Sequence record: PQ898399.1
Length of the DNA: 64,000 nucleotides
Strand: one strand, 5' to 3'
Below, one piece after another: positions 3,344 through 30,161 of the stretch; within the stretch, counting starts at the first letter, position 1; each line of letters opens with the position of its first letter. Below the pieces are notes generated by a model. The model did no database searches and was not told where the DNA came from. It saw only the letters and a program-made list of their open reading frames with translations. The translations under genes and the position numbers were made by a program.

Positions 3344-3616
3344 ATGTCTAACGTATCTAATGTAGCTAAGCCTTCTCTCTTCGCAGCAATCACTGGTGCT
3401 GTTGTCTCTACTGTGTCAGTGGTAACTACTACTGCTGAAGCCATGAACTCACTGGCTAATGCTGGTAACCAACTGGCTAAGGTAGCAGAGAACAAAGCTA
3501 CTCGTTTCGGTGAACTCATCGAGATGAAAGACCAGATGACTTACAACGCAATGAAGCATGAGCTTGACCAGCAGGTTGCTGCTCTCGCTGCATCTCTCGA
3601 TACCAAACGTAAGTAA
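3344..3616 (+). CDS. First early protein, Ala-rich/coiled-coil hypothetical
   Basis: GGAG RBS before ATG 3344; monocistronic between hairpin and terminator. Confidence 0.8.
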   Translation: MSNVSNVAKPSLFAAITGAVVSTVSVVTTTAEAMNSLANAGNQLAKVAENKATRFGELIEMKDQMTYNAMKHELDQQVAALAASLDTKRK

Positions 3617-3621
3617 GCATC

Positions 3622-3654
3622 AGCCTCATCCTTCGGGATGGGGCTTATTCTTTT
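3622..3654 (+). terminator. Intrinsic terminator
   Basis: AGCCTCATCC-TTCG-GGATGGGGCT then T-rich tail. Confidence 0.8.
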
Positions 3655-6181: not shown

Positions 6182-6480
6182 CAACTGTTAACTTATGCTA
6201 TCAGGCTGGTAAATACACTTTTATTGCTACGCTCGATGAGCAAGATATAGAAGGGTTAAAAACCAGAAGATTAATGGGTATGCACAAGCGTCAGGGAAGA
6301 TTACGTATGTTAATCATGGAGACTGACCGCATAGCGTTATACCCGAATGATCTTCATCGTATGTATACCATCCCAGAAACTGGTATGCGTATTCATCTCA
6401 ATGTACCTATTGCACCTGATGTAATGCACTGGGTATGTCCTACAACTGATGAGCTTAATGCTCTTATCTACTTCGAGTAA
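6178..6480 (+). CDS. Small early protein with KT-LLG motif
   Basis: LDEQDIEGLKTRRLMG. Confidence 0.7.
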   Translation: MTTVNLCYQAGKYTFIATLDEQDIEGLKTRRLMGMHKRQGRLRMLIMETDRIALYPNDLHRMYTIPETGMRIHLNVPIAPDVMHWVCPTTDELNALIYFE

Positions 6481-6486
6481 ATAACT

Positions 6487-6660
6487 ATGGTTGATATCGA
6501 ATATAAACTCATTAGGAATGAGAATAAGCAATCGCGTTATCCTTGGGTAGTTATCAAAAGTTATCCCGGATTCTTCCAGTATTTCTACTGTTCTGACAAA
6601 CAGAAGAAAGATTTCCCTAACCTGGCTGACCTATACAAAGAGGCTCGTAAAAATGGCTAA
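6487..6660 (+). CDS. 57-aa hypothetical protein
   Basis: MVDIEYKLIRNE...; fills gap between neighbours. Confidence 0.55.
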   Translation: MVDIEYKLIRNENKQSRYPWVVIKSYPGFFQYFYCSDKQKKDFPNLADLYKEARKNG

Positions 6661-22869: not shown

Positions 22870-25344
22870 ATGCAAGTCGCAACTCTCGATCATGGCTCGT
22901 CTGCAACGCTGGGTGCTGTAGCTGCACCGCAAGCTGTATCCATTACTGGTGATATGTCGCTCATTATGATGCTGACCACCAACCTGTATTCAAACCAGAT
23001 GTTAGCAGCTATCCGTGAACCGCTGTGTAACGCGTGGGATGCCAACATCGAAGCCGGTACTACCGATCAACCACTGGTGATTAAAATCACCAAAGACGGC
23101 AACCTGATGATTCAGGATAGCGGTCTGGGTATCCCGGCAGAGAAAATGAAAGACGTATACGGTGTATACGGTCAATCTACCAAAAAGGACAATGACGCCG
23201 TTACTGGTGGCTTTGGCCTGGGTAGTAAAGCTCCTTGGGCTTTGGCTGACAGCTTCCGTGTGATATCTGAATGCGGCGGTATTAAGACCATCTACAACAT
23301 GCCTAAATCATGTGTGGAAAATGATGGTCTGCCCGGTATTCTGCCAGTGGCTACTATGCCAACTGAACGTTCTGGTTTAACTCTGTTAATCCCGATCCCT
23401 GAAGACAAAATGGCTGAAGCAGTTGACTACGTTAAAGCCATTGTCTGTCACGGTGCAATGAATGCGACCTTCGAAAACGAGATCATCGGTGAAGGCCCAT
23501 ATCCAATGCCTGTGCTGGAAATGTCAGACGAGCCAGGTTCGTATAACGTGGATTCTACAAGCTGGTGGCGTGGTTACATGGGTGACCATTCGATCTTTGT
23601 TCGTTATGGTGCTGTCATCTATCCGATGCTGCGTAACCCAAAAACGGACAAAGTAGCTAACGTACTGGAAGACTTCATGGGTATGGTAGGTTTCCGTCGT
23701 ATGGTCGTTCAGGCCGCACCAGGCAGCCTGGCATTGACTCCAAGCCGTGAAGCCTTGTCATCGCATAAGATGACAGAAGATGGCCTTGTAGACCTTCTGA
23801 CGGCACTAGTTAAGCGTATCGAAGAAGACCTGATTCAGCAGATTCCAGATAGCATTAAACATGCGATCCATAAGCTGGAAACAGCTAATTATATGGAATT
23901 CAGCAATGAGACTACTTTAACCTCCCGTCACGATGGTGCATGTGCTATTCAACCTCATGCGGTGCGTAAATATCTTCGCTCAAAGTTGGGTAGCGGGTTC
24001 CTCGCTAAGTATCAGCGTTTCCTGTACCACGCAGAAAACCGGGGCTTCAAACTTAAGTATCAGTTTGAAAACCAGTCAGCAACTAAGCGCTATCACAAGC
24101 TGCGTTTGATGTTCATTGAAAACTACAAACGTCGTGCTAATCGCCGAGGAATTCTGCTGCAATTCTTCAATCACTACGTGATGCGACCTATGGGTAAAGT
24201 ATTTACTACCAACCCCGATATGCACCCTAGCAACTTACGCCTCAGTTTCCAGAACTACTGGAATGATCGCAAAGTTACTAAAGGCGACTTCTGCCATTCA
24301 ATGGGTAATGGTGAAGACTTCAAACGTCTGAAGGAAATGGTGGATAAAAAGGTTTACGTATTTATCACCACCCGTCTGGCAGGCGTAGCCAAAAGCATCA
24401 ACGATTGCCCTAGCATTGGTCATACTGACCTGGCCTGGGTATATCGCGTAGATCCGAAGAAGCGTAAAGAGATTGCCAACTATGTTAAGGCATTCGAAGA
24501 TGCCGGGTATTCTGTAGTGGATCTAAGCCAGAACCATTCATGGGACTCAGTTGCACAGGAAGCTCTGCTTGCTGCTCGCACTAAGCCCAAGAAGGCGAAG
24601 GAAGATAAACCCCAGATTAAAAACATGCTGGCTACTCTGGTGAACTTCTACACCCCACGTCGTAAACGTAAGATGGAAATCGGTGAAATTTCTGTAGCCG
24701 AAAACCTCACTTACGTAACGGATTCTCCCCTGTTCTATGTAGAACTGGATGAGTTCCGTAAAGACACTCTGGGGCGTTTCGTTCACATCGCTGATCTGAC
24801 TGACGAAGAAATGCAATTCGGTGTGGTAGTGCGTAATGGTATTGAACGCCGTATGGCTGAAAACCGTGGGGCTATCTCTGTGGACAATTACTTTGCTCCT
24901 AAGCTGGTTGCTAAGCTGAAGACCAAAGCATATGCCCGGTACGTTACCAAACAACGCCAACCATCAATTAGCGAAGAGTTTGATGTTACTTCAAGCGATC
25001 TTAAGCTGTTCCGTACACTGGGTATTACCTTACCTGGTTTGGACAAACTTAAGTTCATTCCTGAACTGGAACGAGCACGCGAACGTGCAAGATCCTATCC
25101 AGGAACCCTGCTGGCTACTATCGACGATCCGGTAGAACAGGATGCTTTACAGGCTATCCTGGGCTTAACTTTCGAAGCTCCGGCATTCGTCAATAAATTG
25201 GCAATCCTGAAAAAAGACCCGATGTTGCGTCAGTTAAATATGCGCAATAACAGTCTGCTTGACTGGATTGATCAATATCCAGAGCGTATTCCTGCTCTGA
25301 AATCCCTCGTTTTAAGCGCGCTCAAAAACGGAAATAAATCATGA
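22870..25344 (+). CDS. rIIA: rIIA-like protein (GHKL/Hsp90-like ATPase domain)
   Basis: [40 protein letters not shown]. Confidence 0.92.
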
Positions 25345-27473
25345 AACAACAACTGATCACTATCATTGCTCTGTCAGTAGATAGCAAGGTGGCTGTTCTC
25401 TATAAAGAGGACGGTTCCACCGTCACTATCCCACAAGGGGATGCTCGTCTGCCCCTTATCGTAGAGAAGGCCCGTGGGCCTCTCTCTTTAAATCCACCTC
25501 TGCCAGTTGAGGTTGACATCACCCCTATCTTTGCACGTCGTGAAGAATTCGAAGACGCTGAGAAAGGTACTGGTGGCGTTATCAAATTCTTCCGCGTAGC
25601 GAAGAAATTCCTCAGCAATCTGGTTAACACTGAATCGCCCGATAAGGTCGATGAAAGTGCTGCTCATATCAGCCCGCTGGAAATCGGTAAATTACCGTGG
25701 AAAGCTCCGGTTGATGTAGCCCAGTCTCTGCAAGAGATGGTGGACGCAGAAGATGAGGCAGGTACTGAAGCCTGGGATGCTAAGCCAGAAGGCGAAGAAG
25801 CTCCTGTGCCTCAGTCTGTCTTCATCGAGAAGCTGCCGAAAGACTACAACAAAGTTGCAGTCATTAAAGCAGTACGTGAAATCACTGGCCTGGGCTTACG
25901 TGAAGCTAAAGATCTGGTTGAGTCTCCTCAACCGATCCTGGTACTTACCAATGCCGATGACGAGTCTGCCAGGGTAGCTGCCATGCTTCTGAATCGTGCA
26001 GGTGCATACGTGGAAATGAAGCCAAGTGTACCGGGTGAAAAGCTGTTTGCTCTCAGTAATGACCAGAAAGTTGAAGCTGCGCAACAGCGTATGCAGCAAC
26101 TGATGGGTAATGCTAAGGACACCAGCGATCCTGAGTTCCATGCTCCGATGAAGGAAGATGAAACCATTGTTGCGGTACATACCGAAACTGGTGCAATCAT
26201 CCCGGATGCACACAAACTCGGTCACCAGCTTAAGGCTGCATCGAAGCTCCAGAACTACACTGGTTTCACGAACTTCGTGGAACGTCTGTCAGCTATCATT
26301 GACCAACGTGGTCACTCGGTAGAAGACCTGATGAAATTCATCGAACATGGTGATCTGCCGATTGCAGATGATGGTTGTATCATCATTTACAAGCGGCTTA
26401 ACCGCCAGGGTAAAGGTCTGTTTACCGATGTTCACTCCGGCAAAATCAAACAGAGAGTTGGCTCTTATGTATTCATGAAGCCAGGTCTGGTTGATCCAAG
26501 CCGTCGTCAGGACTGTTCTAATGGTCTGCACGTAGCTTCCCTGTCGTACTTACGCCAATTCAGTGGTGATGCCACTGTGGTAGCTAAAGTACGTCCAGAG
26601 GATGTGTTTGCTGTGCCTGAATACAACACGAATAAAATGCGTGTTTGTGGTTACCACATCCTGGCTGAACTGAATACGGCAGAGCGTGACATTGTTAACA
26701 ATGGTGGCTCTCTGTCCAGTACCCCGGTCGGTAAAGCACTGCTGAACGACATTATCGCTGGACGCCATGTGCCGATCACTCAACTTGTTGAAGTGGGTGG
26801 TCATCGTGGTACTAACGTCACCTATACTGACGTTAAACCAGAAGACCGGGTACAGCCGGAAGTATCGGCTGCGGCGGTTGAGCATGAAACGCTGGATACG
26901 GAAGCATCACTGGATCCTACCGTACCAGTGGCTGATGCCATTGAAGCTGATAAACTGAAACCGGTTAGCCCGGCTGAACCTGAAGCGAAAGCTGAAGCAG
27001 AGCCAGCTAAACCTATCGAGGTTGAAGTGAAACGTGAAACCAAAGCACAGACTGCACAGCGTCTGTGGGCAGAGTATCGTACTCAGCCTTCTGCTGCGCG
27101 TCTGGAAACCCTGGTAGCCTTCAAGAAGGCATCCAAAAAGGGTTGGTCTGCACTGGGTATCGACGATGCTGCTGTTAAGCTGATCGAAGAAGAAACGGCT
27201 AAGGCCGCTGAGACTACCGTTAAGGTAAGCAAAGTCTCTGGCTTTGAAGACGTTAAACCAGTAGCTAAAAAACAGCCTAAAACACAGTCCTTCACCTCTC
27301 CGGTGAAGGGTACTGGGCCAAAAGCTAAAATGGCTGAATGCCTGAAGTGTGGTGTAACTTCTGTGGGCGTAGCACAAGCTGCTCTGCTCATTAAGAAGTC
27401 AGCCAAGAAATCCTGGGCTGCTCTGGGAGTTAGCGAAGATCTGGTTAAACAGATTGAAGCTGCAACGAAGTAA
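25341..27473 (+). CDS. rIIB: rIIB-like protein carrying an inserted ribosomal bL12 C-terminal-like domain
   Basis: [28 protein letters not shown]; bL12-like segment 25815-26021. Confidence 0.9.
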
Positions 27474-27493: not shown

Positions 27494-27516
27494 AGGCCAC
27501 CTTCGGGTGGCCTTTT
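27494..27516 (+). terminator. Intrinsic terminator
   Basis: AGGCCACC-TTCG-GGTGGCCT-TTT. Confidence 0.8.
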
Positions 27517-27548
27517 CAATGTTTATCCACGAGAGAGGTCGGATTTAC

Positions 27549-30161
27549 ATGAGGCATATCATCTATGCTACGCGGGAAACATATGAGACAGCGATCCTCA
27601 TCAAGGAGGCAGCATTACTGCCATCTTCTATAGAACGCTTCTATGTGGATCCCATGCACATGACTGGGTACAACAAAGAGAACATCGTTGTATTCACTCT
27701 GGACTATCAACCCAATAACAAAGCTCCGGTAGGTCACTGTAAAGAGTATCTGCTGAAGTCCCTGTTACCTGCCCTTAAGAAGCTCAAGACTAAGTACGTT
27801 TACTGTGCTGATTCGAACTACTTTAAGGTACTAACCAAAAACACCAAAGCAGATGCCCAATTGGGTTATGTGCTGCCGTGTGCTCTGCCGGGTTATGAAG
27901 ATCTGCAAGTGGTACTTGGTATTAACTACCAGGCACTTACTTACAATCCAAACCAGGAAGATAAGTTAAACCTGTCCATCCAGACGCTCACCAGCACGCT
28001 CTCAGGCTCTTATAAAGCCCTGGGCGCAGATATCATCAAGTGGGCTGATTATCCTGTTACAGACCGGGAAATTGACACTGCATTCGCACGTATCATGACC
28101 TGGCCTGAAGTGGCGATAGATACTGAAACTTTCAGTCTTCACCCATTTAAAGCTGGCTTAGGCACTATCTCATTCTCCCCGGATACAACGGGTGGTATTG
28201 GGATGCGCTGTGACATGATCCAGCAGGATGGTGAAAACGTCAGGATCTTCAATCCTTACTTCCGTCATAAGCTCCGTAAGTTCTTCGAAGCGTATAAAGG
28301 CAAAGTGGTATATCACCACGGTGCTTACGATATCAAGGTGCTCATTTACAACCTGTTTATGGCTGACCCGTTGGATAACGCTGGTCTGCTGGAAGGGTTA
28401 GAGGTGCTTACCCGGAATATCGACGATACGAAGCTGATTGCTTATCTGGCTTTAAACAGCACCGCAGGTAACGAGTTAGGGCTGAAAGCTCTTGCTCACG
28501 AGTTTGCTGGCAACTGGGCTAAAGACGATATCAACAACATCATGGCTATTCCATTGATGGAACTCCTGCAATACAACGTAGTGGATACCATGTCCACCAT
28601 GTATGTAAAACAGAAGTATTATCCGATCATGGTGCGTGACGGTCAGAAGAAGATTTATCAGGAACAATTCCTGCCAAGTCTGAAGACGATCATCCAGATT
28701 GAGTTGTCTGGGATGCCGCTTATACCTGAGAAGGTTAAAGCTGTCAGGAAGCAACTGGAAGCAGGTCTGGACGCAGCTATCCAGCTTATGCGTGGAACGA
28801 AAGCTGTGAAGGCAGCCGAACGTATCATCCAACAAAATGCGATGATAGCGGCTAATGCCAAACTGAAGACCAAGCAGCATCCTATTGAGCATTTTGCTCA
28901 TATGCAGCTTAACCCAGGCTCAAACCAGCAAGTAGCAATACTGCTGTATGAGGTAATGAAGCTTCCGGTCATTGAACGGACGAAGACGAAGCAACCTGCT
29001 ACAGGTGCTGATGTTATTGAGAAACTGGCTAACCATGCGAAAACAGAAGAAGCGAAAGCTCTGATGAAAGCACTGGTGGACTATAACAAAGTAGCCAAGA
29101 TCCTCAGTTCGTTTATCCCGGCATTCGAAGCTGCGTTTGATAAAGGTAATGGTCGTGCTTATCTCCACGGTAGTTTCAACCTCGGTGGAACGTTATCCGG
29201 GCGATTAAGCTCATCTGACCCTAACCTGCAAAACCTACCTTCAGGCTCTCGCTTCGGTAAGCTGGTTAAACAGTGCTTCTCTGCACCAGACGGATGGATA
29301 TTCGCCGGGGCTGACTTTAACGCACTGGAAGACCGGATTAACGCCTTGCTCACCCAAGATCCGAACAAGATTAAAGTCTTTACGGATGGGTATGATCCTC
29401 ACTCAATGCGTACCTACGCATACTGGCCGGAGAAGTTTGCACACCTGCCGAACACAGTTGAGGGTATTAACCGTATCCAGGAAGAGTTCAAGGCTGAACG
29501 CGGTCAGTCCAAACCAGTGTCATTTGCCCTGCAATATCTGGGAACCTGGCTTACCCTGGTGAAGAACTGTGGTTTTGAACCCGATGAAGCGAAGCGTATT
29601 GAAGCTAACTTCCACAAGCTGTACGAAGTATCAGGTAAGTGGGTTAAAGGTAAAATCGAACAGGCCACCAAAGATGGTTATGGTACAGGAGCCTTTGGCT
29701 TACGTATCCGTACACCTCTGTTGGCTAAATCGGTACTGGGTTCAAGTCGTACCATGCGAGAGGCAGAGGCTGAAGGCCGTAGCCTCGGCAATGCTGTAAG
29801 TGGTCAGTCCTATGGATTGCTCACCAACCGGGCTGTAAACGAGTTTATGGAACGTGTATGGGCATCGCCTTATCGTAACGACATAATCCCTGTAGCGTTG
29901 ATTCATGACGCTATTTACGTGCTCATTCGTAACAACCCTGCTGCCGTTAAGTTTGCCAATGACAATCTCATTGAGTGTATGGCCTGGAAAGGTTTACCGG
30001 AGATCGCTGATCCCCGTGTACCGTTGCCAGCTAACCTCGATTTGTATTGGCCTAACTGGGCTACTCCGATCACTCTGGATAACAACCTCAGCGAGGATGA
30101 AATCCGTCAGGCTGTGGCTAAAGAGTTACAAGCCAGAAAGGAAAAAGCTAAGGCTGCGTAA
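27549..30161 (+). CDS. DNA polymerase, family A (N4 gp39-like)
   Basis: Exo I DTET, GRLSSSDPNLQNLP, motif A ADFNALE, motif B RGQSKPVSFALQY, motif C IHDAIY. Confidence 0.95.
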   Translation: MRHIIYATRETYETAILIKEAALLPSSIERFYVDPMHMTGYNKENIVVFTLDYQPNNKAPVGHCKEYLLKSLLPALKKLKTKYVYCADSNYFKVLTKNTKADAQLGYVLPCALPGYEDLQVVLGINYQALTYNPNQEDKLNLSIQTLTSTLSGSYKALGADIIKWADYPVTDREIDTAFARIMTWPEVAIDTETFSLHPFKAGLGTISFSPDTTGGIGMRCDMIQQDGENVRIFNPYFRHKLRKFFEAYKGKVVYHHGAYDIKVLIYNLFMADPLDNAGLLEGLEVLTRNIDDTKLIAYLALNSTAGNELGLKALAHEFAGNWAKDDINNIMAIPLMELLQYNVVDTMSTMYVKQKYYPIMVRDGQKKIYQEQFLPSLKTIIQIELSGMPLIPEKVKAVRKQLEAGLDAAIQLMRGTKAVKAAERIIQQNAMIAANAKLKTKQHPIEHFAHMQLNPGSNQQVAILLYEVMKLPVIERTKTKQPATGADVIEKLANHAKTEEAKALMKALVDYNKVAKILSSFIPAFEAAFDKGNGRAYLHGSFNLGGTLSGRLSSSDPNLQNLPSGSRFGKLVKQCFSAPDGWIFAGADFNALEDRINALLTQDPNKIKVFTDGYDPHSMRTYAYWPEKFAHLPNTVEGINRIQEEFKAERGQSKPVSFALQYLGTWLTLVKNCGFEPDEAKRIEANFHKLYEVSGKWVKGKIEQATKDGYGTGAFGLRIRTPLLAKSVLGSSRTMREAEAEGRSLGNAVSGQSYGLLTNRAVNEFMERVWASPYRNDIIPVALIHDAIYVLIRNNPAAVKFANDNLIECMAWKGLPEIADPRVPLPANLDLYWPNWATPITLDNNLSEDEIRQAVAKELQARKEKAKAA

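Follow-up and report, generated by a model that had tools for sequence, protein, structure and literature searches.

A ribosomal bL12 C-terminal domain lies within the rIIB-like protein of N4-like phages of Enterobacterales

A bL12 C-terminal domain in an rIIB-like protein

[quoted passage not shown] Comparison with related proteins indicates that this L12 domain is maintained by selection, with its putative GTPase-binding face intact, without a stalk anchor, and with the uL11 contact mostly gone. The domain lies in a 64-kb stretch of GenBank record PQ898399.1 (64,000 nucleotides; hereafter, the window), in which positions 25815–26021 on the plus strand comprise 69 stop-free codons in frame with an open reading frame (ORF) of 710 aa at 25341–27473. 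A preliminary description of this DNA had stated that the segment follows the L7/L12 CTD and had proposed an HMM search for Ribosomal_L12. When the 710-aa ORF was searched against Pfam, aa 168–227 matched PF00542 (Ribosomal_L12 C-terminal domain) with 58.7 bits (E 7e-16), against a gathering cut-off of 25.9 bits; the 69-mer alone scored 63.9 bits against this family, and the nearest relative (G001) scored 63.4 bits. The PDB sequences matched by phmmer were exclusively bL12 chains (1ctf, E 3e-10), and aa 170–227 were 58% identical to Salmonella bL12 by BLASTP. These matches, and the superposition on 1ctf described below, bear out the likeness that had been proposed. The bL12 N-terminal dimerization/uL10-binding domain was not found in the 710-aa ORF, where Pfam sees the CTD alone; residues 1–105 form a β-rich domain that is kept in rIIBs and whose fold, judged from the AF2 model and the homolog alignment, differs from that of the bL12 N-terminus. 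A six-frame HMM scan found no second L12 copy elsewhere in the 64-kb window. The features of the locus, with the evidence for each, are as follows.

22870..25344, plus strand: rIIA-like gene, 824 aa, with a GHKL-type ATPase N-terminus (phrog_2979, E 2e-179; weak HATPase_c_3 match)
25341..27473, plus strand: rIIB-like gene, 710 aa, ortholog of N4 gp34 (phrog_2886, PF26926, colinearity with N4 gp34, BFVD structural matches)
25341..25655, plus strand: N-terminal domain (aa 1–105), conserved and specific to N4-like rIIBs (pLDDT 78–87; dN/dS 0.12; kept in all homologs)
25656..25811, plus strand: disordered acidic/Pro-rich linker (aa 106–157; pLDDT <50 over aa 106–153; dN/dS 0.37)
25812..26024, plus strand: bL12 C-terminal domain (aa 158–228), β1-α4-α5-β2-α6-β3 (PF00542; superposition on 1ctf and 8yeq; dN/dS 0.26)
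25848..25925, plus strand: helices α4–α5 (aa 170–195), corresponding to the translational-GTPase contact face of bL12 (E. coli residues 64–89; alignment with Salmonella bL12; dN/dS 0.16)
26058..26840, plus strand: core common to T4-type rIIB (aa 240–500; matches to phrog_609, 11221, 3803, and 36818 at aa 301–453; dN/dS 0.10)
27039..27215, plus strand: C-terminal three-helix repeat, copy 1 (aa 567–625; helices 568–581, 585–598, and 609–624)
27312..27470, plus strand: C-terminal three-helix repeat, copy 2 (aa 658–710; AF2 model and internal repeat; also kept in N4 gp34)
27507..30161, plus strand: DNA polymerase I-like gene, a marker of the N4-like middle region (ORF list; PF00476 on the same neighbor in related contigs)

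The carrier is an N4-type rIIB

The preliminary description had called the carrier protein rIIB, and this identification held: phrog_2886 matches the ORF over its full length (E 3e-180), four further rIIB phrogs match as well, and PF26926 (Phage_T4_rIIB) is the precomputed Pfam family of the protein. It is 36% identical to N4 gp34, with which it is colinear, and the predicted rIIB structures of many phages in BFVD match it. From the N-terminus, the protein consists of the N-terminal domain, the linker, the L12 CTD, a short linker, the core, a low-complexity stretch, and two three-helix units. The gene is flanked by rIIA directly upstream and by the DNA polymerase I gene downstream, and the order rIIA-rIIB recurs in N4, Ea9-2, Frozen, and metagenomic relatives. 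At window positions 25341–25344, the stop codon of rIIA and the start codon of rIIB share the sequence ATGA, which suggests that the two genes are translationally coupled.

The three-helix unit of about 50 aa, present twice at the C-terminus, carries the motif KK.xKK.W.ALG; the internal repeat was detected by blastp with E 1e-6, and the unit is kept in N4 gp34 and in all N4-like rIIBs seen. It gave no PDB match above noise. For rIIB outside the L12 domain, no convincing PDB match was returned when Foldseek and VIA were run with the full 710-aa model, a query from which single domains may escape. With respect to origin, the window matches Enterobacter phage vB_Ecl_SABI, an N4-like phage of 76 kb, with 100% identity. 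Positions 25341–27473 of the window correspond to 210075–212207 of PQ898399.1, which is deposited as 'Enterobacter phage SonariX' with a length of 248,734 bp; this record includes a stretch 100% identical to the 76-kb phage and may join more than one phage genome. ARAGORN found no tRNA genes within the 64-kb window.

The domain adopts the bL12 fold and is flexibly tethered

An AF2 model of the 710-aa ORF, built with 120 homologs as input, had a mean pLDDT of 73.9. Its secondary structure elements in the region of interest (strand 158–164, helices 171–182 and 186–193, strand 199–205, helix 207–219, and strand 223–228) follow the β-α-α-β-α-β topology of the bL12 CTD. The model superposed on E. 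coli 1ctf with a TM score of 0.91 and an rmsd of 1.2 Å (Foldseek), and on 8yeq, the Mycobacterium tuberculosis CTD, with a Z score of 11.9 (VIA-align). The domain had also been described as sitting between acidic/Pro linkers of rIIB, and in agreement with this, aa 106–153 are acidic and Pro-rich and have pLDDT values below 50. The L12 domain is thus predicted to fold independently, like a bead strung between a disordered acidic linker of about 50 residues and the T4-rIIB-like core.

The same fold is found in ClpS, and a ClpS-like adaptor function would make binding of N-degrons or ClpA possible. ClpS structures do match the AF2 model, at Z scores of 9–10.7, and they also appear in the Foldseek list. 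However, their identity to the domain in the structural alignments is 10–18%, against 42–47% for bL12; no ClpS Pfam family was reported even at E 0.1, PF00542 being the sole family; and the PDB matches at the sequence level were bL12 in every case. We therefore rejected a ClpS identity on sequence grounds, namely the lack of a family match and the bL12-only sequence matches, and regard such an adaptor function as very improbable.

The factor-binding face is conserved, whereas the uL11 contact is mostly lost

NMR has placed the contacts of EF-G and EF4 on E. coli bL12 at residues 66–70 and 80–85 (PMC3505967), and the contacts of IF2, EF-Tu, and RF3 lie in the same regions, as cited within that paper. 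Across helices α4–α5, 24 of 27 residues of the rIIB domain are the same as in Salmonella bL12. E. coli residues 66–70 (VAVIK) are identical in the rIIB domain, R73 is kept, and residues 80–85 (LKEAKD) read LREAKD, a single K-to-R change. By contrast, K95, which with L106 marks the region of bL12 that contacts uL11 (PMC3505967), aligns with a hydrophobic residue (L200/L202) in the window's domain and in most rIIB copies. The pattern K..IK..R and GL(K/R)EA.D is present in at least six deeply separated rIIB lineages in which identity over the rest of the domain is about 40%; N4 and the homolog P0067 have lost it, and Ea9-2 has lost it in part.

We then compared selective constraint by region, using pooled pairwise Nei–Gojobori estimates from eight relatives that are not mutually independent. 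The dN/dS ratio was 0.26 for the whole L12 domain, 0.16 for its helices 4–5, and 0.30 for the remainder, compared to 0.12 for the N-terminal domain, 0.10 for the core, and 0.37 for the upstream linker. The linker is the loosest region of rIIB (mean pairwise identity 0.68), and in some close relatives it is wholly swapped while the L12 domain is untouched. Conservation of helices 4–5 could in part be due to the needs of folding. As far as can be judged from the alignment, the preserved GTPase contact residues fit a coupling of the domain to translation factors. Such a coupling was one of the two roles inferred in the preliminary description; it is plausible, and the residue conservation supports it in part.

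The domain is patchily distributed among rIIBs

The survey of presence and absence in rIIB homologs that the preliminary description had suggested was carried out on the best 120 of 1155 homologs. Our own HMM detected the L12 domain in 39 of these 120, at the same site throughout; the other 81 are without it and have a low-complexity linker of 26–93 residues at that site. The rIIB core was found in 376 GenBank phage records, in which domain-less rIIBs are the majority. By tblastn, about 30 N4-like GenBank records carry the domain, all of them phages of Enterobacterales, with hosts that include Enterobacter, Erwinia, Klebsiella (KP8-like phages), Pectobacterium, Kosakonia, and E. coli (phage EK8).

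In N4 gp34 itself, this site is occupied by a cryptic L12-like domain that has degenerated (aa 154–222; positions 6445–6651 of the N4 locus L003). This copy has no Pfam match but was recovered with the rIIB-L12 profile (hmmsearch E 2e-7; hhalign probability 93%); its helix 5 motif and K70 are lost, and the degenerate N4-type domain is confined to 16 Enquatrovirus records.

On an unrooted tree of the conserved rIIB parts, the pattern of presence and absence requires at least four changes. In a tree of the CTDs, a single branch splits all rIIB domains from 76 bacterial bL12 CTDs (SH-aLRT 93, from a short alignment with long branches). A single insertion in an ancestor of the enterobacterial Schitoviridae is the probable origin of the domain, which was then lost at least four times or degraded, as in N4 and Ea9-2. 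One old insertion with repeated loss is favored because the insertion site is constant, because the basal lineages and N4 carry a copy, and because one branch separates the rIIB domains from the bacterial CTDs; we infer this direction of change on a tree whose root is not established.

A recent capture of host rplL, or gene conversion by it, was also considered and rejected by sequence comparison. The rIIB domain is 52–63% identical to many proteobacterial bL12s, and Enterobacter bL12, at 55%, is no closer to it than many of these. At the DNA level, the domain resembles Salmonella rplL (about 80% identity) over helices 4–5 only, with differences spread over synonymous sites, and the second half of the domain cannot be aligned to Salmonella rplL DNA. 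Moreover, the domain does not nest within Enterobacterales in the tree.

Compensation by a stand-alone L12 gene where rIIB is without the domain was not seen in four of the five genomes checked: no L12 domain was found elsewhere in the genomes of four N4-like phages with a domain-less rIIB. In the roseophage DSS3phi2 (DSS3P2), rIIB is without the domain and a stand-alone L12-CTD ORF of 108 aa lies in the early region (positions 3550–3633 of the record); this ORF keeps the K..IK..R / GLKE.KD pattern.

Candidate roles of the domain

Our preferred reading, which draws on the conserved residues and which we hold to be about evenly balanced between right and wrong, is that a client of the stalk CTD, such as a translational GTPase, is bound by the domain and kept at the rIIA/rIIB complex. 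rIIB is one half of the rIIA/rIIB module, and the domain would be an optional, tethered accessory on an anti-abortive-infection protein. It would serve as a flexible 'fishing line', as does the ribosomal stalk itself, binding its client (a translational GTPase of the host or a different stalk-CTD client) weakly and retaining it at the complex. The retained helix 4/5 surface is the one that, in bL12, contacts the G domains of EF-Tu, EF-G, IF2, RF3, and EF4. We propose this mechanism because that surface is kept while the uL10 anchor is absent and the uL11 lysine is mostly lost; without the bL12 N-terminal anchor, the rIIB domain has no means of attaching to uL10 in the stalk. The bL12 CTD binds the factors weakly (Kd 0.1–0.4 mM; PMC3505967), and a single copy per rIIB would therefore need oligomerization or a high local concentration.

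N4 requires rIIA/rIIB to overcome lambda RexAB, and these proteins play the same role in T4 (PMC11879866). The L12 domain is dispensable for the core role of rIIB and is unrelated to its core anti-Rex activity, since most N4-like rIIBs are without the domain and since N4, in which the binding motif is lost, still needs rIIA/rIIB against RexAB. The function of the domain is likewise dispensable, because 81 of the 120 homologs (the best 120 of 1155) do without it, four phages of this kind have no L12 domain elsewhere, and motif residues are lost in N4 and Ea9-2.

A bolder claim, which we put forward as doubtful, is that the L12 domain physically links rIIB to the translation apparatus and captures either a translational GTPase or a stalk-dependent defense effector at the rIIA/rIIB complex. 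If true, the rII counter-defense module of these phages would protect or monitor translation during abortive-infection attacks and, taken together with bacterial fusions of TIR or kinase domains to L12 CTDs, the stalk CTD would be a contested interface in phage–host conflict.

Three other explanations bear on the same evidence. As a free CTD, the domain might mimic the stalk and act as a decoy, soaking up an effector that either needs the bL12 CTD for access to the ribosome or is directed against bL12 or the factors bound to it. PDB entry 8phj (cA4-bound Cami1 on the 70S ribosome with a bL12 chain) was among the matches, and in that work Cami1, a CRISPR-associated RelE-type RNase, is reportedly delivered by the stalk. 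It also speaks for a decoy that rIIB is already a counter-defense protein, that a patchy, lineage-specific presence fits an arms-race accessory, and that bacteria possess TIR and kinase fusions to L12 CTDs. However, we know of no bL12-targeting defense system in the Enterobacterales hosts of these phages, and it is the GTPase-binding face that is conserved, a surface for which a generic decoy would have no specific requirement; we consider this explanation unlikely. Docking of the domain on the ribosome, where it would replace the stalk CTD at the factor-binding site (uL11 and the bound factor) and park rIIB to act on or sense translation, appears quite unlikely. The lack of a bL12 N-terminal domain leaves rIIB without anchoring to uL10, and the residue at the uL11-contact position K95 is hydrophobic here and in most rIIB copies. 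The 418-aa bL12-domain protein of phage FSL SP-076 was represented by one peptide in high-salt 70S preparations, as docking would have it, but the tagged protein did not co-purify ribosomes (PMC6375957).

The domain might also be a relic that was captured once and is now a partnerless folded spacer between two rIIB domains, slowly decaying. Repeated losses, the degenerate copies in N4, P0067, and Ea9-2, and the majority of domain-less rIIBs are what slow decay would produce. Against this, dN/dS is well below 1 and, within the domain, lowest on the helices with the known binding role, and at least six deeply separated lineages retain the binding motif while the other positions of their domains are about 40% identical; a spacer would not need a binding surface, which makes a relic improbable in our view.

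Prior reports and comparison with known systems

Mizuno et al. (2019; Nat Commun 10:752; PMC6375957) described bL12 domains in cultivated phages, including that of Erwinia phage Ea9-2 AHI60108 (724 aa); they also noted that some domains are part of larger polypeptides, that some homologs lack the domain, and that factor-contact residues are conserved. The statement in the preliminary description that phage bL12 domains had been reported, including in N4-like phages, is correct (PMC6375957). Its statement that no function was known for an rIIB fusion is fair, but the fusion itself had already been listed in 2019, as Ea9-2 AHI60108. The term rIIB is absent from the text and supplements of that study (PMC6375957), and the papers on Pectobacterium N4-like phages make no mention of an L12 domain. 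In GenBank, the name 'ribosomal L7/L12 C-terminal domain protein' is attached to the phiA41 gene and to a metagenomic protein with 98% identity, whereas RefSeq uses RIIB for the same genes. The L12-rIIB fusion is therefore already known at the level of annotation and of the 2019 list. What is new here is the explicit rIIB identity of the carrier, the same-site pattern of presence and absence including the degenerate N4 copy, and the constraint on the factor-binding helices alongside the lost ribosome-anchoring features.

The well-preserved, well-understood interaction domain in rIIB provides an inexpensive and concrete handle on rIIA/rIIB, with the natural domain-less and degenerate variants as ready-made controls. 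No biochemical activity of rIIA/rIIB is known to us, although the genes have been famous for seventy years. Discovery of a partner would tie a counter-defense module to translation; without one, rIIB would be a documented example in which a phage protein harbors a ribosomal domain that was captured and is decaying.

Among known systems, the bacterial bL12 CTD belongs to the same Pfam family and has the same β-α-α-β-α-β fold, a near-identical helix 4/5 surface, and a flexible hinge. Bacterial bL12, however, has the N-terminal dimerization/uL10-binding domain, the rplJL operon, and K95, all three of which the phage copy is without, and the phage copy is embedded midway in a 710-aa protein. The ClpS N-degron adaptor has the overall fold in common with the rIIB domain but differs in having no sequence-family match and an identity of just 10–18%. 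T4 rIIB and N4 gp34 share with the present protein the core (PF26926 and phrogs), the rIIA-rIIB gene order, and structural matches. T4 rIIB (312 aa) corresponds to the core only. In N4 gp34, all domains up to and including the C-terminal repeats follow in the same order, and the difference lies in the degenerate domain at the site, which has no Pfam match; the anti-Rex role is known for N4 and T4. Ea9-2 AHI60108 is an ortholog that is 44% identical and colinear over its full length, lies directly downstream of an rIIA-like gene, and has the domain at the same site; part of its helix 5 motif is lost, whereas among the rIIB copies that of the window is the best preserved.

The top matches in a search of 1.8 billion representatives with the domain were bacterial proteins with 3–7 tandem L12 CTDs, whose fusion partners are TIR_2 (P0137), a protein kinase (P0144), LRV/HEAT (P0123 and P0127), and LRR (P0195) domains; one of these proteins, Nannocystis pusilla WP_346660302.1, has seven L12-CTD copies and is annotated 'ribosomal protein L7/L12'. 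We know of no characterization of such bacterial multi-L12-CTD fusion proteins. They resemble the rIIB fusion in that a bL12 CTD is reused outside the ribosome within a larger protein, and they differ in being bacterial, in having 3–7 tandem copies, and in their other partner domains. The stalk CTD is thus widely reused outside the ribosome, which speaks for regarding it as a portable interaction module.
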